46,878 nucleotides of DNA. Origin: Parasitella parasitica NRRL 2501 (taxonomy: Eukaryota; Fungi; Mucoromycota). Location: positions 1-46,878 of the forward strand of contig MU619417.1 of assembly GCA_025201805.1 (NCBI GenBank), given 5' to 3'. This document shows positions 826 through 46,246 of this stretch, piece after piece (within the stretch, counting starts at the first letter, position 1; each line of letters begins with the position of its first letter). The translations under genes were made by a program, and so were the position numbers. The notes beneath the pieces were generated by a model that saw only the letters and a list, made by a program, of their open reading frames with translations, made no database searches and had not been told where the DNA came from.

Positions 826-2059
826 AATTCTAGATGCCAGAAATGGCTTGTTTATTACACAATAAGGAAAGCTCAGTCGCATTAGAAATAATCAGGATCC
901 TCAAATATTACAATCCTGCCCAAAACCATAATAGTATCAATTTCAATACCAACATATCGAAATCTCAACTACAATACAAGTGAGAGAATGTCAACAAAAG
1001 TGATTCTTCAAATAAGAAGTAAAATAAGCATTCTCACTGTAGAGGCAATTTTACAAGTAGTATAAATACAAGCTCTCTTAAAGAGCATGTATCTTTTCTT
1101 CAGTTTTCCTTTTAATCGAAAATAAAGGTGGAAAGACTATACAGTAACTGTATTTCTCTGGCTTTATTTTTTTACTTTTTTTTATTTTCACATAAAATTG
1201 ATCCCAATTTTATTGCAGTATCCATAGAATATCATGGTTACAACTATTTCAACTCAGTTGTCATGGCAACCGTTCCTGATCGGATCTAAGGTTAAATGGC
1301 ATCGATTATTCTATCTAGTAAATAGGAGTATTGAATAGAATGTCTTGTATAAGAAACCATCTATTTGGGTTCTACTTATTCTGAACTGCGAAGCTCAACT
1401 TATCGATGAATGATTCACATTCATAACGATCAGCTGATTAAATATAGAAATAGGCCTTGCTCTGACTACTACCGTGTTATAATATTGTTTGACAATTAAA
1501 TGTCAAACATGACCTGATTTTATTTTATAGATTGGTTTAGATAGATTTATTCTAATATAAATAGACAGCTTCTTGTCAATCAATAAATCAATAGTTTTGT
1601 ATCTGGTAAAATTAAGTCTTTATTACTTTCTTATATTCTTTATATCATATACAATCACCCCCTGCTGTGCTCATTTTCAAGACCATGCTAGCATGGATTT
1701 AAGAAGACGTAATGCAATATCAAGAACAAATAGAAGCAACTCCAACACTCGTTAAATCCGCCATTGGTTATCTCTTTATCAACCGTTGCTGCCAAGACGT
1801 TCTGGATGAATAATCCAATATAATTTAGGTTCATATCCATAATAATCATTTACCCTTGGAAAACTAGTATAAAATATAGTTTTTAAATGACGTTTTGATG
1901 ATCTTCATCTAAAAAATAAATAACAGTTTTAAAAAGTATTTTTCATATATTTTTTACTAGTAATTTCACAGTATTGCTTATTTGATTGTAAATTTTGGTA
2001 AAAAGTGGTAGAACCGCGATCTAAAATGGAAAACTTTATAGTTTGGCAGTGTTGGGTTA

Positions 2060-2258
2060 AAAAAGATAATAAAAAACCAAATGTTAACGAGATACAAAAA
2101 CTTAAAGATACTTTATTTAACATCGAAATTGCATCTGCTATTTATACTTTTTACAACTACATAAATTTATGGTGACTTATTTAGATTACTAATTGACAAG
2201 AATAATTCACAGTGACAATCTACTTGGCAGGGTACGATATGAGGTTATACAGCAAGGG
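2060..2258. repeat. Large inverted repeat, left arm outer block (pairs with ~3512-3725)
   Basis: 2129-2183 is the reverse complement of 3601-3655 at 53/55 identity. Flanking blocks (ACGAGATAC.AAAACTT; CAGGGTACGAT) also match. Confidence 0.9.
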
Positions 2259-2313
2259 CTACACGTCTTTGTGTTATGCGCAGAGGATATATAAATATGA
2301 TCTGCTCAAAAAA

Positions 2314-2728
2314 NNNNNNNNNNNNNNNNNNNNNNNNNNNNNNNNNNNNNNNNNNNNNNNNNNNNNNNNNNNNNNNNNNNNNNNNNNNNNNNNNNNNNNN
2401 NNNNNNNNNNNNNNNNNNNNNNNNNNNNNNNNNNNNNNNNNNNNNNNNNNNNNNNNNNNNNNNNNNNNNNNNNNNNNNNNNNNNNNNNNNNNNNNNNNNN
2501 NNNNNNNNNNNNNNNNNNNNNNNNNNNNNNNNNNNNNNNNNNNNNNNNNNNNNNNNNNNNNNNNNNNNNNNNNNNNNNNNNNNNNNNNNNNNNNNNNNNN
2601 NNNNNNNNNNNNNNNNNNNNNNNNNNNNNNNNNNNNNNNNNNNNNNNNNNNNNNNNNNNNNNNNNNNNNNNNNNNNNNNNNNNNNNNNNNNNNNNNNNNN
2701 NNNNNNNNNNNNNNNNNNNNNNNNNNNN
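2314..2728. other. Assembly gap (415 N)
   Basis: Run of N preceded by an A-tract. Confidence 1.
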
Positions 2729-2830
2729 TATTACATGTTCTACTGTACATTAATAGCTTATTCCTTGTCATTGTATACAAAGAATTACCAATCTAATAAT
2801 TGCTTAATCTCATGCCTTTCTGGCACAACA

Positions 2831-3024
2831 CTTTGATCTGACAGTTCCTTAACCTTTATCCTGGTGCTCAGATCTGTTTTACTTACAGGAATAACCTTCT
2901 TGATTTGAAACAGAGACTTTATTCTTCAATTTACACAAGCGTATCACATCACATCATTAGACTATCTTCAATCTTCAATTGAAGTACATTGCCATGATCT
3001 CCTGTGTATAATTATGGCAGATCA
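2831..3024. repeat. Large inverted repeat, left arm inner block (pairs with 3318-3505)
   Basis: CTTTGATCTGACAGT, ATAACCTTC.TGATTTGAAACA.AGACTTTATTCT, CATGATCTCCT and ATTATGGCAGATCA all occur reverse-complemented in 3318-3505. Confidence 0.9.
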
Positions 3025-3317
3025 CAAACTCAAGTAAACTCAATCCTGAACACAATTGAGGAACAAATCCCAATGAAATCAACATGGCATGTTCATGGAC
3101 AATAAATACAATCTATCGTTCCATTCTCTAAATCACAGCATGTTTCACACTTGTATCTTATCCCCACCATCAGTCTACTTAGATTTACTAGTATATTAAC
3201 CATCGTTTTTCTCATGTAATAAACGAGATCTTTACCTGATTAATTCACAACCGTTTTATTTGAATAATTTCTCATTGTGATAAATCAAATATGATAGTAC
3301 CTTATCACTATTGTTAA

Positions 3318-3725
3318 TGATCTGCCATAATGCAGGTTAGGAGATCATGATGGTGTACTTTAATTAAAGATTGGAGATTGTCCAATGATGTGTTGTTAGA
3401 CTACTTGTCGAAACAGGAGAATAAAGTCTTTGTTTCAAATCAGGAAGGTTATCTGTAACACAGATCTGTATGATTGACAAACAATAAAGTACTGTCAGAT
3501 CAAAGATCAATAACCTTGTAGTATAATAATACATCGTACCCTGTTAAGGATATGATGTTGCTTGCAAATTATTCTTATCGATTAGTATCAACTAGTATTT
3601 TAAATAAGTCACCAAAAATTTATGTTGTTGTAAAAAGTATAAATAGCAGATGCAAAGTTGAATCTTTAATAAAGTAATCTCAAGTTTTCGTATCTCGTAA
3701 TTCAACGTTTTATATTATACTTTTC
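3318..3725. repeat. Large inverted repeat, right arm
   Basis: Colinear reverse complement of the two left-arm blocks; 293-bp unpaired spacer at 3025-3317. Confidence 0.9.
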
Positions 3726-38173: not shown

Positions 38174-40923
38174 ATGTCATCTTCTGGTTTGATAGCAGCA
38201 AGAAAGAGACTCGAAAACGCTTTAAAAAGATATGATATACCTACTGAATCTGAGCCTAAGCAAGTCAGCAAATGCGAAGAGTAACGTATAGCCTACATGA
38301 TTGGCATCACATTATACTAATACTGAACTTTAGTGGTGTATTGTTACTATCCTTGTTGCAATCTCGACTTAATTGGACAAATGCAACATTTGCACGGTAC
38401 AAGACCGATCCAATACAGCAACCAAAAAGAACCAGCAATACACGTAGAAAATGGCCCAACATGAAGTATTTAGGTACCTGCACTTTGCAATTGGGTGCAC
38501 ATCTGTACGAAAACACCAATTTTTTCGAAGCCACCAGATCAGATTCATGGAAAGATATTGCCATCAAACAAGGGCTGATGAAGCCACCAATAATACCAGT
38601 TGCAGATGTAACAAAAGATAATAAACTAGAGTCTGATCCTATGCCAGATCTTGTAACGACAGAAACAGAGAAGAATGCACCCATCGCACCAAAAGAGGCG
38701 CAAGATGTTGTAATGGAAGAAGCTGATAAACCTGTAAATACCGTGTCTGAGCAAAATACCACCACAGAAGTAGAAAAGAGAAAGCCCACAGAACAAACAC
38801 AAATACAAGCTGAACCGAATACCAAAGAAGATCCAGTTCTAGAGACACAGACAAATGTAGGAAATACGAGTGCAGTTAGAGAGGTCCCCACAACAAACGT
38901 GGAATCACAATCTAGTACATCCTCAGAACCACAGCAGACAAATACATTCAACGTGACAGAAAGTGAATTACCACAACCACAACCACAACCACAACCACAA
39001 CCAGAGGAGGCTCCTGATGAGAAGTTGAAATTTGTGGATATAGTATTTGAATTGAAAGAATTTCCCAATGAACGATTTATATTTCCCAAGGAAGCGATTA
39101 TACAAACTACACTGACAGGACCAAATCCAGAAGATTGCTTGGTAATTTGGGGTGTAATAAAATTATAAAAAAAATACTGATTATCAATTTAGATCATCGC
39201 CTCTTTTGTACTGCCACTTGATCTAACACAAACAGAGGAATTCTTTCAGAAGCCTAAAGAGAAAATCTTAAAATACGGAGACACTTGTCAATTACCTTGT
39301 ATCAAAGACTACTATAATCAAAATACGACCCGCGAAACTCGAACTACGGCCGATACGTCTCTAACACTAGATTCTTATCAGCCTGTTAACATTCGTATGA
39401 CATGTGCCCACATCACAACTGCCAATGCTCTAAAAGAATATGTGCACAAAACTGAAATAGTTCGAAAGAACATGAAGGATAAGGTAATCTGACATAATAC
39501 TTTTACGCTTTGTTTTCTGTGCTAAAGCTTTTATCTATAGCTCAAATTCTTCCCCAAGAGAAAATTCTTGAAATTTGATGTTTCCGATGATCCAACTCGC
39601 CAGAATGAGATTCGAGAACTTATTAAAAGAGCTTCTGTTGCACTAGATATTTCTACAGGCCCCGTTCAAGCCGAAAAGAAACGAAACGAGATTCTCAATG
39701 CTATTCGTTTGGGCAAAAGAGAGCGAGACGAGAAATTTGAATCAGAATGTAAGTTGATATAACACTTGGAAGGAAAGGACATCTTCTCATTAACTTACGT
39801 ATGGTGTAAAGTGCCGAAACACAAATTGAATGCTAGAGACGATGGCTTTATGAAATGTGCTTACTGTAGCACTAAACAAACATCCATGTGGAGAGCTGGC
39901 CCCGGAGGACATGGTACTCTTTGTAATAGCTGTGGTATTCAATGGAATCGAGGCGAAATCTTGGTAGATGCGCCTGTTATAAGCAAAGAAGAGGAGAAAC
40001 GACTTTGGAAGGAAAGGAAGGAGAAAGAAAGGATAGCAGAAGCGTTGGAATTGGAAAAGGCTGAGAAAGAGGAAGAACGGCTCAAGAAGAAGATAAAACA
40101 TCATCATAGTGGTGGAAGCAGTAGCCATCACCAAGATTTTTCCTATAACAGTAGCACTTTCGCTGCCCAACTGCTTCAAAAAAGACACCTTCAAAAGCAA
40201 GCTAATTTACCTCCTGGAACTACCACTGTTGCTGTTGCTTCTACCTCTGCTGCCAGTGCCACCAATAACCCTCTCTCTGCAAATCCTTCTGTGGTTATTG
40301 CACAACAATCCAAACCCGAAGCTAAAAAGGCATTGCCATCAAAATCCAAAATGAATCAGGCAAAGGCAACTGAATCTAATGTGCCTACTACAACATCTGC
40401 ATCTCCTCTTCCATCTTCAACAGCGAACCATGCACCAGCCGTAATAATAGCTCAACAACCTGGACAGGCACAAGCACCACCGCAAACACAACAGCAAGCT
40501 GCTGCACCTGTACCCTTGTCACTGTATAGTCCTGCAGGCATCCCTCTCCCGACTTTATCCATTGACTTCGCTGGTCATTTGCAATTTGCTCATCCTAACT
40601 GCGGTATTACTTTACTCGATCGCCATTTTTCTGTGCGTCTATTCAAAGATGGCTGCGATCAAACGACAATTGAATTTGACAAAAAGGACTTAACAAACGC
40701 CATCTTTGAGGTTGTAACCGAAGGAGAAGCAGCCCTTAAACGCGAAGTGTTAAAGATGAAGATTGTGCCAGCAGATGTGAAGAAGATTGCGGCTTTTGGA
40801 AAAAATATGAAAATTGATAAAAAGCATGGTGTCAATATTAGGTTTTTGGAAAAGCTTGACCCTAGTGGTGGTGCTGTAGTGCAAAGAATTTTACAAAGAT
40901 GGCTTGTTACGGCCCCTCAATAA
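38174..40923 (+). CDS. Swc3-like chromatin protein carrying a GATA-type zinc finger, 5 exons
   Basis: GATA finger CAYC-x18-CNSC (WRAGPGG..TLCNSCG). N-terminal blocks GVLLLSLLQSRLNW...LGTCTLQLGAHLY and DIVFELKEFPNERFIFPKEAII resemble fungal Swc3 motifs (from memory). Introns at ~38281, 39142, 39484, 39749. Confidence 0.8.
38971..39003 (+). repeat. (CCACAA)n coding repeat (PQ repeat)
   Basis: Five CCACAA units encode PQPQPQPQPQP. Confidence 0.9.
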
Positions 40924-41368
40924 AGTACAATTGTCTTCTGGAGTGGGCGGATTTTATCATTTGACAATGCTTAAAGGGTACCGTTTCCTGTAAATAAGAG
41001 ACATCTGTAATACATATTCCGAGTACAAGTTCCGGAATCCTCTAGAATTGAGAATAAAACAATCGGATTTTTTCCACGGAGCAAAGGTTCATCAATTTGT
41101 CCGAAACCATTCAACCGTAGTAAGCTTCTCCATGCATTCTTTTATTTAATTTATCAGAGAATAATCATCATTTTACAAGTAGTTCTCGTCTTTCTCCTCA
41201 GCCAAGTATACAAGCGTCCAAATAAAAAAAAAAAGGGGGAGTGGGTGGGTTGATTCAACTTTTTTTCAGAATAAATACTGTATCCGTATATCAAGCTAAA
41301 TTCCGAAAGAAAAAACAGATGATTTTGGTTACTTTTTATTAAACAATTTATAAATGATAATGTCACCT

Positions 41369-41520
41369 ACTCAATAATATTAAAAGGTCAAAGTCAAAGA
41401 TGCAGCACTCGATTAATATTGAGCTATCCCCACGTTTTATATTTGTTTACTAACCTTCAAAGAGTATTGCCTCCATCGAAAGGCGAGCCCAGTACCTATT
41501 TTCTGTACAAAAAAGATAGG
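41369..41520 (-). ncRNA. Candidate omegaRNA scaffold at the 3' end of the Fanzor-like ORF
   Basis: Three consecutive hairpins on the minus strand: CCTAT..ATAGG (41520-41495, overlapping the stop), GCCTTTCGATGGAGGC (41484-41469), and GCTCAATATTAA...TTAATATTATTGAGT (41424-41369). Confidence 0.35.
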
Positions 41521-44500
41521 GCTAAATTGTTGAATTGTGTGCGCTTGGCAGTGGTGGGGTTTGGGTCGAAGCAGGGGAAAGTTACTCCAAACAAAAGGCA
41601 ACCAAGACCAGCAAGACCAATTGCAAGTGCTACTTGGTCCCGGCACATTGTCTTGAAAGCATTGGGGCATTCGGGATTTAAGCAAAGAAACGAACAGGCT
41701 GTTCGTTGTATTTTGCCATTGAGAGCAGCCACAGGATGAGAGAGCTTGTGGAAGCAGAAAACACACGTTTGTGTATAGCGGCCATGTCGCTGCTGTTTCC
41801 AGAACCCATCAAATTGTCTGTGTCCCTTGATGCGAGAGCCGAATCCATGTCCACGATCACCGACAAACATAATCGGCCTCTTTGCACAAGAACTCTTTCT
41901 CTCGTAAGCTGCTAGTCTGTCAAAGCCTTTTCTGTAAGAGAGTTCCAGCCGTCTTCTTCTTTTTGTCATGGATTGGTTGTACTAGAATGAGCGCAACAAT
42001 GCGCGCGCATTAGTGTGATGCGAATAGGCTTGCTCCAAACCATCAGCTGTTGAGCATTGATAAAGGCTATTTTTTCCAAGATCCATTTCCATCTCCAAAA
42101 CTGTATACCCGTCTTCTGTGGTCTTCTTTTTTCGACTCAACGAATTTGTAAAACTAGCCAAGCCGGTATCTTGATTAATTTGCTTGGAGCCCAAAGTGAG
42201 AGCGTGAGGTAGAGTCAAGTGTTTAAAAATATCAGCTTCATTTGTATTTGAACCATCAGCATTGTCTGCATCTTTGGTATCCTCTATAGGAGGCAAACAT
42301 ATTTAGAATCAGTTCCTTTAACTATATACATATGTGTTCAAAGGCATTGAGTTACATACACAAGATCTGAAACCTATTGTACAGCTTCAAGTGTGATGCG
42401 AAACAATCGATATCAAAAAACACTGTCTCGGTAGTCTTTATAATGCCATTATCCGTGCCACTGAACACGGCTGTTGTCATATCCATGTCTTCATCCAGCT
42501 TACATTCCTCTACCTTTCTACAGCATCCCTTGCTACCCACAGTGAAGGGCTTAAATGGTATTAGATTTTTCAAACAATCCACCAAAGGTTTTCCATATTC
42601 ATAAATCTTCCGCCGTAATGACGGAAGCATCTCCTTTGTATCTCGAATAGCTACCATTAATCTTCTCTTCCTTAACTTTACTGCTTCCACATTCTGATAG
42701 CGCTCGTCTTTTTCTTCAACTTTAGCCTTCCAAGTCTTCGTAAGATCAGAAGTTTTGTCCCTTTCTTGGGCATCTACGACTTTCTCATAACATTGTTTTT
42801 GTTCTTCAAAGTTGGTTCTCCAAGCTTTCTTGAGACCACGGACACTGTCGTTGTCTTGAAGAAACTGATACAGTTCGTTTGCGCGATCCCTGAGTGACTT
42901 ATCGAGCTCCTTCTTTTGAGCCTTCATAGCTCGTAACTGGTCGTCATCGGTATGATGGCTCAGCTTGCTTTTTGTTTCTGGGTTCCTGCGACTACACTTG
43001 AAATGTCCAATGCTGCCACACAATCTGACAGTCTTCGATCCTGGTAAGATGTGTATTCTATTTACGAACTCCATCCCATAGCTTGATGGCACGCTTTTCA
43101 GTTTGCCAATGTTAAAGAAACTGCTAAAGACGGCGTCTTTATGCTTTACGTAATTGCCTTAAAAGTCTCGAAGATACATCCGTTTTGAAAGTTTGCTCGA
43201 GCAGAAAAGTGCATACAGGGTCGTTGTGTCGATAAGAAGTGCATGCAAAGTAGTGGGTCTGACTATTGGAATAATTTAGCAACTTGGCCTTCATAGTCGA
43301 TTGAGCGCAGTAGTTGGTTTGCCATCAAGATGAACTTGAGTTGGCATGGAAGGAGATGATAAGTATCGCTTGATGCTATGTATGGCTGAATGAAGCTAGT
43401 AATTTTGATGATTGTTGCAAATTCTTGTGTGGTGATGTGTTCATCCTGATCTTGGAGGTATGCGTCTGTGATATCTTGCGTGGCAAACAATGCTGATCTT
43501 GCAATGTTGACTAACTGCCTGATTCTTTTTCTAGATACATTAGTATTGTTCCCTTTCTCGTAGTCCTCTCTATCATCAGTATCGCTTTCTTGGCGCTTTT
43601 CTTGCTGCTGCTGCTGCTGCTGCTGCTGATGTTTTGGATTTCTATCCCTTTCCGCTTGCTACATACATTCCGAGTTATGACACTATGTCTTCCTTTAAAA
43701 ACCAGACGACTCCTACCTCTCTACAAAGTACTTGCTCATATGTACCGATTTTCATCTGGCACATGTCTGCTGCCTCATGCTTTTCTTTCTCTTAATACTT
43801 GGCTTTTCGCTTCTTTTCATCGGAAAACAGTTTTTGTCTTCCATTTCTTGTCTTGATCAGCACTGAAATTTCTGCCATTGGGATACTGCAATTTGTCGCT
43901 CTTTGTCTGCCTTTATGGTTTTTTCGAAGCTTGGCCGATTGTCTTTCAGTCTTCTTCGTCTTGATAGCGTGGACTTAATTGGGAGATAAATGTACAAACA
44001 ACAAGAAGTTCAAGAGCTTTTTAAGTAGCTTGTTGACAATAGTATTCTCGGACCACACAATACGAAGATTCGTGTAATACTGTTGGCGAGCCATCTTCAT
44101 AACGTGGAAGGACAGATTTTGATGTGGGTTGGCTTCATCACGGCCCAAAACGTTTACAATTGCCTTGTGGAGAGGCGACTTTTTAAATTTAGACTCTTCA
44201 ATACCCATTTGACCATAGTATGTTGAGTGCATTTGTTCCAAATAGGGTTGTAGAAACAGCGATTGATAGTGAGCATTGAACTCGTCATTCTCGAGAGAGC
44301 TGGAATTTAATGGCTTTGGTACAGTGATATCTTCCTCTAAATACCCTTCTGGCAGTATTGACGCAATGCTGTTTCCACCATCGTAGACAAGTTCAATTTT
44401 GCCATCATTAGATTCAAATGTATACTCAGCAAACAACAGAGCGAATTTGAGAACCTGCTTGCTAAAGTCAGAGGTATAATAAGATACTTGCTACATGGTA

Positions 44501-45522
44501 GCACCGATTGTATTGATGAATAATGATCTGATGTCGTCTTTCAAGTCGTCTCTGAGCACTTGGCTCTAAGAAATTGAGCATGCGCGAAATTGCTCAGCGT
44601 CATCTTGAATCGCTCCATCATTGTCTTCATCTTCGCTATCTTCATTCTCTTTATAATCATTGCTACCATCATCCTTTTCTGGTAAATCCAAAGGGATTGG
44701 AAGTTCTTCTCAACAAATTCTGTCCAGTATTTACAATTCTTCTTTGGACTTCCAGCATTTTTATTCTGAGTATAAACGGTGCTCAACATCGTTGTGATTT
44801 TTCCAGGACTCTTCATTTTTGCTTCTGCTTCTTGCACTACACCTTTGGGTATTCTAGTACTTTTCAATAAAGAGATATACAGCTCATCATAGTCTCCATT
44901 CTTCTTTCTGCAATGTATAATTGAGGCTAAAAGACATATTCGAAATTGCAACTGCAGGGCATTCCAGTAGTCCGTTTTCTCTTTGGATGTCTGGACTTTG
45001 CTTCGAAGCCCACTGGATGGCTTTAGAAACGAAGCCGGAGGAATGATGGTAGTTGAGCCTGCAACATAACATTCTAACTGTCTTTTTTTGAATTTCATGT
45101 CTGGCGGCAGGCGTACAATAAAGCTAAGAAAAGAAAACTTGCTAGTTTTGGATGGGATGTCGCGTTTGCAACCTTTGTTGGCCCAAATTCTCAATTTATC
45201 AATCTCCCGTATCCCTAGCCTGCCAAAGCAAGCTGTAGCTGCGATTTCAGGAATCGCTGGCTTGTTTTCAATTTTTGGATTATGTCTCGTTGCTGTCTTG
45301 TCTTTAGTCGTCTATTTTGCTGATGTAACTGAAAACACATTGCAGTTAACAGGGAATTGTGGTGAGAATTTTGCCCAACTTCTTGATTATGATTGTTGTT
45401 GAGTGCATGCATCATGAAAGTAAATTGGCTGTTCAAGTGCTGATTTGTCCGCAAGACTCACGACTGATCTGACATTTGTCCTTCTTCATCATTAATAGCA
45501 GTAAGGCGTCTTTTGCAACCAT
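41496..45522 (-). pseudogene. Decayed large Fanzor (eukaryotic TnpB-like RuvC RNA-guided nuclease) gene, probably transposon-borne
   Basis: Colinear minus-strand fragments give FRACSIS*SQVLRDDL, QYYTNLRIVW, PIVRPTTLHALLIDTTTLYALF, FSSFFNIGK, RuvC-I VFSGTDNG (Asp 42453-42451), LRSF*YNQSMTKRRRRLEL, PIMFVGDRGHG..RIKGH, zinc finger CVFC...CLNPEC and RuvC-III RDQVALAI (Asp 41639-41637). Multiple stops and frameshifts. The 5' boundary is approximate. Confidence 0.8.
43603..43629. repeat. (CTG/CAG)n microsatellite inside the Fanzor relic
   Basis: About 9 TGC units. Confidence 0.9.
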
Positions 45523-46246
45523 TAAAAACGAATGACATAGATGATACGTTATTAACAAACAAAATAGTGGTTGATATGTATTGTTTTTTAATAGAATAAA
45601 TCGAAAATGTGAAGGTTTATATATGATTTCTAACTTCAGGGCTCTAATAATAACGAGATTTCGTGGCAAGTCAAGACTTAATTTTACTGTCTCAAATGCA
45701 GGGAAATATTCAGTTATTACCTTCTGAATTTGGACTAATATTTTTACTAATAGGTATAGAACATATGACTATCAAACTCGCAATGCTGCATAGTTTAAAG
45801 ATTCCATGTATAATATATATTAAAGCTAGAATTGAGTAGAGAAAGAGTTGCATTCATTTCTACTTTGGGGGTATAATTGTCCACGTTATTGATGCGTGCA
45901 AGTAATCGTCTTATACATTTTTGTTTATACATAATATATACAGCAACTGCACATATTGCAGTGCGGCACATACATTGCATACGTCAAATATTAAATGAAG
46001 CTACCTTTATTTCTGAATAAAACTAGATACAAAACTGGAAACTTTTCTAGACATAAAAGATATAAACTCTATTCATACTAAAACTTTATCTTGATCAATC
46101 TTCATCTACATAACTTGCTATAGGCCCATTTGCTATAAAATTAGCAAAATCTTGTTTTGGCAGTATCTCGATAGCAAAGCTAGATATTGAGATTTTAAAG
46201 ACGTAATATGACATACAATTATTTTACTAGATATGACGTCTTCTTA

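Follow-up and report, generated by a model that had tools for sequence, protein, structure and literature searches.

A dead, 5′-truncated repeat copy with a very probable large Mucorales-type Fanzor1 gene in Parasitella parasitica

The window considered here is the whole stretch of 46,878 nucleotides (nt) of contig MU619417.1 of the fungus Parasitella parasitica NRRL 2501 (Mucoromycota; GenBank assembly GCA_025201805.1, positions 1 to 46,878, forward strand). Between positions 41275 and 45734 its minus strand carries a repeat unit with the remains of a single gene. This locus is very probably a 5′-truncated, dead copy of a single-gene repeat, with a gene for a Fanzor1 protein of ~1,200 amino acids (aa) that belonged to the large Mucorales type. 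An initial annotation of the sequence had already joined a row of minus-strand open reading frame (ORF) fragments into one broken gene, and this is borne out by at least ten other copies in the genome, which show these pieces in an unchanged order. The parts of the unit and the defects of the window copy are as follows.

41275..45734, minus: repeat unit of the 4.55-kb type (blastn against fetched copies, 88-98% identity, similarity edges at 41271-41275 and 45734)
45099..45734, minus: 5′ non-coding part, kept in short internally deleted derivatives (copy comparison; joint in a contig of run X1)
41457..45098, minus: ancestral coding span, very probably of a Fanzor1, now broken (conserved ATG; frame-by-frame reading; segment homology to the ORFs of other copies)
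42284..42359, minus: intron of 76 nt, GTATGT..TATAG (copy comparison; one X1 contig skips 76 nt there)
41275..41456, minus: conserved 3′ non-coding end (90-95% identical among copies)
~44693, minus: 1-nt deletion, frameshift, common to the copy on C93
44568, 44493, 43977, 43794 and 43161, minus: in-frame stops (alignment to copies)
~43272, minus: 1-nt deletion, frameshift, common to the C93 copy
~43135, minus: in-frame deletion of 18 nt, common to the C93 copy
42360, minus: G>T giving a junction TAG, window only
41984, minus: in-frame stop, common to the C93 copy, TAT in the other copies
~41772, minus: in-frame deletion of 33 nt, common to the C93 copy
~41632, minus: in-frame deletion of 3 nt (alignment to copies)
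41498, minus: in-frame stop, window only

The start codon of the gene (ATG, 45098-45096, opening MKFKKRQ...) is conserved in the copies and resembles the N-termini of published Mucor proteins, while the stop codon of the family is the TGA at 41459-41457. The initial annotation had given the gene a span of 41496-45522 and ~1300 codons. However, position 45522 lies in the 5′ non-coding part, and the TAG at 41498-41496 is a stop of the window copy only, with CAG standing in other copies and in 6/6 covering X1 contigs. With ATG and TGA conserved at 45098 and 41457, the coding region therefore runs from ~45098 to 41457 and comes to ~1,200 codons, ~100 fewer than proposed; read frame by frame, the window has ~1,180 codons, with ~1,200 before its deletions. 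Both breaks named at the outset are present, these being the TAG at 41984-41982 and the frameshift near 43270, the latter as the 1-nt deletion at ~43272. The view that the gaps between fragments are breaks held for these two, but one gap (42359-42284) is an intron and there are more breaks than had been named. The G>T change at 42360 affects the last exon base, in the window only, so that the spliced junction codon reads TAG.

Run X1 is a public run kept as contigs, its RNA status being a guess, and it covers a small share of the window stretch. It yielded variants of copies, a single skip of 76 nt at the intron and the joint of a deletion derivative, but no usable expression evidence; among the runs on record, none of RNA contains the stretch. 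One further X1 contig skips 56 nt at 44268-44325, with GT..AG ends on the plus strand, that is antisense to the Fanzor gene, and with a shorter side of 198 nt; it may come from a spliced antisense transcript, or may simply be another copy's deletion variant.

The window copy cannot make a protein and is dead, with premature stops at eight points, two frameshifts and the loss of its catalytic glutamate. That it is instead a working gene, its apparent breaks being introns or assembly errors, is almost certainly wrong. One of the gaps is truly an intron, but the stops and the two 1-nt deletions stand against sister copies, eleven codons including that of the catalytic Glu are gone, several of the defects are common to the C93 copy, and contigs of the independent run X1 carry undeleted forms.

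Along the ancestral protein, the following regions and motifs can be followed in the window; all of the motifs named in the initial annotation (VFSGTDNG through to RD, together with HILPGSKTVRLCG) are among them. Residue numbers refer to the AlphaFold2 (AF2) model of the homologue P0035, with its pLDDT scores (predicted local distance difference test).

43679..45098, minus: N-terminal region, basic MKFKKRQ.. and an acidic stretch; same motifs in the proteins MCi-5/7 and PBl-3
43981-44070, minus: conserved predicted helix motif N..W....NKLLKKLL..L..HLSP, within the N-terminal region
43270..43658, minus: poly-Q/acidic linker, then a helical REC-like segment (P0035 residues ~291-412, helical, pLDDT 80-89)
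43015..43053, minus: HILPGSKTVRLCG, conserved predicted beta-hairpin strand before the coiled coil, family motif TLLPGLKTVRLLG (strands 475-495 in the P0035 model)
42583..42945, minus: predicted antiparallel coiled-coil hairpin of ~100 aa, between the WED-like strands and RuvC-I (P0035 helices 522-561 and 570-628)
42445..42468, minus: RuvC-I, VFSGTDNG, with the putative catalytic Asp (column conserved in 24 family members)
41985-41999, minus: motif LLRSF
41940-41963, minus: motif KRRRRLEL
41850..41870, minus: RuvC-II strand, MFVGDRG, which like that of Fanzors lacks the canonical Glu (family alignment, profile)
41820-41831, minus: motif IKGH
41763..41780, minus: site of the 33-nt deletion, reading RYT/QTC (comparison with copies)
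41667..41765, minus: zinc ribbon (TNB domain), CVFC at 41754-41765 and CLNPEC at 41667-41684
41613..41645, minus: RuvC-III, CRDQV-ALAIGL, with the putative catalytic Asp (aligned with SpuFz1 D606)

The order at the C-terminus is thus RuvC-I Asp (GTDNG), an insert of helices, RuvC-II without Glu (FVGDRG), an alternative Glu (TNE..TSQTC), CxxC...CxxxxC and RuvC-III Asp (RD). Upstream of this RuvC core lie the coiled-coil hairpin of ~100 aa, WED-like strands, a helical REC-like region and an N-terminal extension of ~450 aa that gave no informative match. The HILPGSKTVRLCG strand is probably part of a WED domain, and structure matches to the coiled-coil hairpin of P0035 are generic coiled coils only. 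The N-terminal region is mostly helical in the P0035 model and of low confidence. For the N-terminal half, the ESM Atlas returned either nothing usable or scores <0.9, with DUF8286 as no more than a lead, which Pfam did not confirm.

In Fanzors the canonical RuvC-II Glu is absent, and cutting requires an alternative Glu that lies ~35-45 residues downstream (PMC10530073). This rearranged RuvC-II, with its downstream Glu before the zinc ribbon, is present in the family, reading TNEHNTSQTC in the locus L023 and TKEHNTSQTC in the locus L020 and aligning with SpuFz1 E541, and is absent from the window copy. Here the 33-nt deletion has taken out the 11 codons PTLITKEHNTS, which include the alternative glutamate, a loss that had escaped the initial annotation. 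As the Glu is present in the family and deleted in the window, the window copy descends from the family and is not a working member of it. The 3-nt deletion has also cost its RuvC-III one codon, that of the conserved Ser of RD..SA.AI.

The identity of the protein was approached with a diverged paralogue and a family profile. The paralogue lies on C29 and has an unbroken C-terminal ORF of 416 aa (L023:3522-4769, minus) with the motifs RFSGTDNG, MFVGDRGLGIGSRTKG, YTNEHNTSQTCPYCF, CVNKDC and NRDTLSALVIGL. The Cas12f1-like TNB domain (PF07282) is recorded in this ORF with an E-value of 0.0016 and in other relatives with E-values of 0.00073 and 0.016, all three below the gathering score. It is worth mentioning that the L023 locus (C29:215000-224900, minus) is 46% identical in its C-terminal part, carries long ORFs free of stops (465 and 416 aa) and retains all of the catalytic residues; it is possibly an intact second subfamily, with part of the locus reading N.

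An exhaustive HMMER search against 1.84 billion representatives returned 531 relatives, and every one of those looked up is a hypothetical protein from Mucoromycota, the longest having 1285 aa (Mortierella, 1285 aa; Halteromyces, 975 and 1107 aa; Mucor hiemalis, 937 aa; others from Helicostylum, Lichtheimia, Rhizopus and Parasitella). Several of the Mucoromycota relatives (757-1285 aa) align with the window from ~44840 to 41500. Among P. parasitica proteins, KAI8642279.1 and KAI8644773.1 form one cluster that is 95% identical to the C-terminal end of a paralogue in this genome, and KAI8646506.1 is 88% identical to part of it. A word-based search of proteins that started from the Parasitella homologue of 757 aa retrieved nothing but its own query.

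When a profile of 24 members was compared with the PDB, the best match was SpuFz1 of Spizellomyces punctatus (8GKH; E-value 2.4e-7 over 235 residues), followed by two Cas12f proteins (E-value 0.035). SpuFz1 E541 and D606, which hold two magnesium ions together with D383 and N385 (PMC10432273), stand opposite the family Glu (TNE..TS) and Asp (RD) in this alignment. The AF2 model of the paralogue (pLDDT 85, predicted template modelling score 0.81) places the RuvC-I aspartate on strand 83-89, and with this model Foldseek gave nine hits with E-values <= 0.001, all rows shown being Fanzor, Cas12 or TnpB proteins, in the order SpuFz1 (E-value 1.8e-6, probability 1.0, TM 0.47), PpFz1, Cas12o, Cas12f and GtFz1. 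The whole-protein model of the 975-aa Halteromyces homologue (pLDDT 68), in which an antiparallel coiled coil of ~100 aa separates WED-like strands from RuvC-I, gave a VIA Z of 14.3 to SpuFz1, with 354 residues aligned, and of 13.9 to PpFz1. Profile and predicted structures together show the C-terminal ~340 aa to be a RuvC nuclease into which a zinc ribbon is inserted, the parts following the order of a Fanzor1, and the proposal of a relic of the Fanzor/TnpB lineage has thus stood up.

The gene lies in a repeat unit, the 3′ end of which (...ATATACCGTTACAGTAT) is sharp in 20 copies with unrelated DNA beyond; in the window its final T is at 41275. Full copies open at their 5′ end with (TA)CAGTATCATAACTAAAAAAAATATTT, and the window copy is without the first ~88 bp that are present in these, beyond 45734. 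The same word of 6-8 nt, (TA)CAGTAT, is found at both unit termini in direct orientation. No terminal inverted repeats pair the two termini of a full copy, and no target-site duplication was seen in the flanks of copies with both ends visible, the unit thus showing neither of the MuDR-type carrier traits (terminal inverted repeats and 9-bp target-site duplications). As the initial annotation had remarked, no transposase is found in the carrier unit, and no Harbinger transposase was found in the copies that could be read.

Each end of the unit occurs at least 40 times in the P. parasitica genome, which places the gene in a multi-copy mobile element, and the C-terminal, middle and N-terminal pieces have 33-82 matching places each in this genome. 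All three pieces are collinear and in the same orientation in copies on C93, C233, C29 (two copies), C9 and C50, and the two upstream pieces are collinear on C15 and C84. There are also short internally deleted derivatives, in which both ends lie 0.55-1.8 kb apart, on C90, C83, C81, C17, C218, C122, C32 and C65 (loci C90:71422-72045, C83:26434-27688, C81:134791-136059, C17:296993-298047 and C218:20717-22073 for the first five). An X1 contig with a word depth of 525 has a joint from 41403 to 45314 and is of the same type. Apparent open frames of 1,250-1,458 aa in the genome search were rejected as artefacts that run across ~3.3-4.0 kb of N, the copies concerned being on C55, C40, C25, C52, C9, C109, C24, C132, C21 and C38 (loci L013-L018, L029-L031).

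The C93 copy is 97.5% identical to the window copy over the longest aligned stretch and 98% identical in the 3′ 2.2 kb, while divergence on its 5′ side sets in at another point. Since the two copies have five defects in common and different 3′ flanks, an already broken copy has moved to a second site, and the element is therefore mobilised in trans.

Some further features were noted around these elements. The derivative on C90 (L048, C90:71896-72206, minus, ~190-205) has a 5′ flank, ATACCGTTACTGTAT, that is a 15-nt match to the family 3′ terminus ATACCGTTACAGTAT; this could be due to insertion into the end of another element, or to a longer terminal direct repeat in that subfamily. Window positions 1235-3698 have matches in the flanks of other copies, with 2065-3698 at the C50 copy and 1235-1693, 1438-1681 and 3025-3234 at the C20, C93 and C21 copies. 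As these pieces recur beside other Fanzor copies, a second repeat family tends to adjoin the elements. In the window itself, positions 39766-40923 of the plus strand hold an ORF of 385 aa that is intact and includes a zinc finger of the GATA type (CAYCSTKQTSMWR...LCNSCG); it stops ~350 bp away from the element's 3′ end.

A site-specific recombination core or an IS605-like target word would be consistent with the identity of the word at the two junctions. One alternative is that the large protein is itself the mobility enzyme, its N-terminal ~600 aa holding a recombinase or integrase fused to the Fanzor nuclease. The element has one gene between sharp ends in at least 40 copies, neither a transposase nor an inverted repeat was found, the (TA)CAGTAT that is constant at the two junctions looks like the crossover core on which a site-specific recombinase acts, and the N-terminal half is conserved across Mucoromycota, all of which would suit such an enzyme. 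Nevertheless, this alternative is improbable. The N-terminal half, predicted with low confidence to be mostly helical, matches no recombinase in Pfam, in the Atlas or by fold; the movement of broken copies and short derivatives fits any trans-acting enzyme, including an unlinked transposase; and Harbinger transposase genes lie within some copies of MCi-5 (Bao and Jurka, 2013). There is a similarly slim chance that the element is a self-sufficient mobile unit, in which the N-terminal half, or the Fanzor-RNA complex itself, would direct site-specific integration. If true, this would join a eukaryotic RNA-guided nuclease to an insertion activity of its own, and the nuclease would not be a passenger of a classical transposon.

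On the analogy of the characterised proteins SpuFz1, GtFz1 and PpFz1, intact members of the family would probably bind an RNA transcribed from one of the element's ends, and would cut DNA matching the guide beside a short motif. Such cutting would favour retention of the element, as opposed to catalysing its transposition. The 3′ 180 nt are conserved among copies and are the place where an omega-RNA would be expected; a comparison of the 3′ non-coding end with Rfam gave no match.

A number of points weigh against the interpretation of the locus as a dead copy of a large Fanzor1 gene with an RNA partner. RNA guidance is ascribed to the family only from the characterised Fanzor1s. In a single-sequence fold the 3′ end folds no better than shuffles (z 0.19), and RNAalifold, run on 15 copies 75-95% alike (mostly 90-95%), finds 0 compensatory pairs. 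No single fragment of the window was significant in a search of all eight against Pfam, or of two against PDB sequences, where the matches were noise; it is because the fragments match nothing alone that the diverged paralogue and the family profile were used, and the Fanzor identification rests on these two. The N-terminal half is without a Pfam match or a recognised fold and is modelled poorly. The link between the window and the MCi and PBl proteins discussed below consists of motifs compared by eye and not of a computed alignment. All copies that could be read are degenerate, with no intact copy among them. Lastly, a TAA near 43680 is present in 7/7 aligned copies, with a +1 frame change there in 5/7.

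The latter could represent an odd short intron, an old shared defect or something else. A second intron near 43720-43660 was considered and rejected, the sole GT..AG pair that restores the frame being 25 nt apart and implausibly short. The same frame change near 43680, together with the low-complexity stretch at 43975-43560, which has stops in every readable copy, could also be taken as a sign that two adjacent genes have been wrongly joined here, namely an unrelated N-terminal gene and a Fanzor of ordinary size. This is very improbable, as the halves keep their collinear order in every copy and across genera, both are spanned by public gene models of 975-1285 aa, the 2013 catalogue predicts single proteins of ~1,100-1,250 aa, and the unit has one conserved ATG with no second start or promoter-like gap. 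A single gene for a large Fanzor1 remains the reading that is strongly favoured here.

The window locus itself carries little weight, being a pseudogene of a family catalogued in 2013. The family merits attention, as the characterised Fanzor1s (SpuFz1, GtFz1 and PpFz1) are much smaller than the Mucorales Fanzor1s of ~1,200 aa, for which no biochemical study was apparent in the literature searched.

The closest known systems are the proteins PBl-3 of Phycomyces and MCi-4 to MCi-7 of Mucor circinelloides, which were listed as Fanzor1 proteins of ~1,100-1,250 aa by Bao and Jurka (2013; PMC3627910, Mobile DNA 4:12, Additional file 3). They agree with the window family in size range and in the basic N-terminus (M..KRR.QE..FTG), and have the same motifs in the same order, these being N.W...KLL..LL..HLAP, TLLPGLKTVRLLG, FSGTDNG, FIGDRGTGVGSRIKGH.RYGG.WK, TNE..SQTC.FCF, C.NP.C and RDSLSALAIGL. 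The carrier of MCi-5 is unclassified, lacks inverted repeats, has a constant flanking ATTTAT and contains Harbinger transposase genes inside some copies (PMC3627910). It resembles the Parasitella element in being without inverted repeats and in having one constant short word, although the word differs (ATTTAT as opposed to (TA)CAGTAT). In contrast, the carriers of MCi-4, PBl-3 and ROr-4 have MuDR-like inverted repeats and 9-bp duplications (PMC3627910), which are absent from the Parasitella element. The large Mucorales Fanzor1 clade is real. The enlarged clade that the initial annotation put forward holds with respect to size, the family being about twice as large as SpuFz1 (638 aa), but as an inference it was not new, having been catalogued in 2013.

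SpuFz1 is the best match of the window family by both sequence profile and structure. Common to the two are a zinc ribbon between RuvC-II and RuvC-III and the existence of ORF-less "ghost" elements sharing ends (PMC10432273). However, SpuFz1 is encoded between 30-nt inverted repeats, while the element of the Parasitella family, with its protein of about twice the length, has none. The two are 13-16% identical over the aligned structure, with the coiled-coil insert and the N-terminal extension being extras of the family. The TnpB proteins of IS200/IS605 and IS607 and Cas12f share the core of RuvC-I, RuvC-II, zinc ribbon and RuvC-III, but are prokaryotic, of ~400 aa, intronless and found beside TnpA, whereas in the window family the RuvC-II Glu is in the rearranged Fanzor position.

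PpFz1 (9CF0/9CF1) is also from P. parasitica and has the same fold (Foldseek E-value 4e-5, VIA Z 13.9), yet it belongs to a separate lineage. It gave no sequence match at E < 10, even with the family profile, and there is no evidence in the window family for the cyclophilin-binding FRI domain of PpFz1. As P. parasitica carries both the large lineage and the unrelated, characterised PpFz1, two Fanzor1 systems can be compared in one host.

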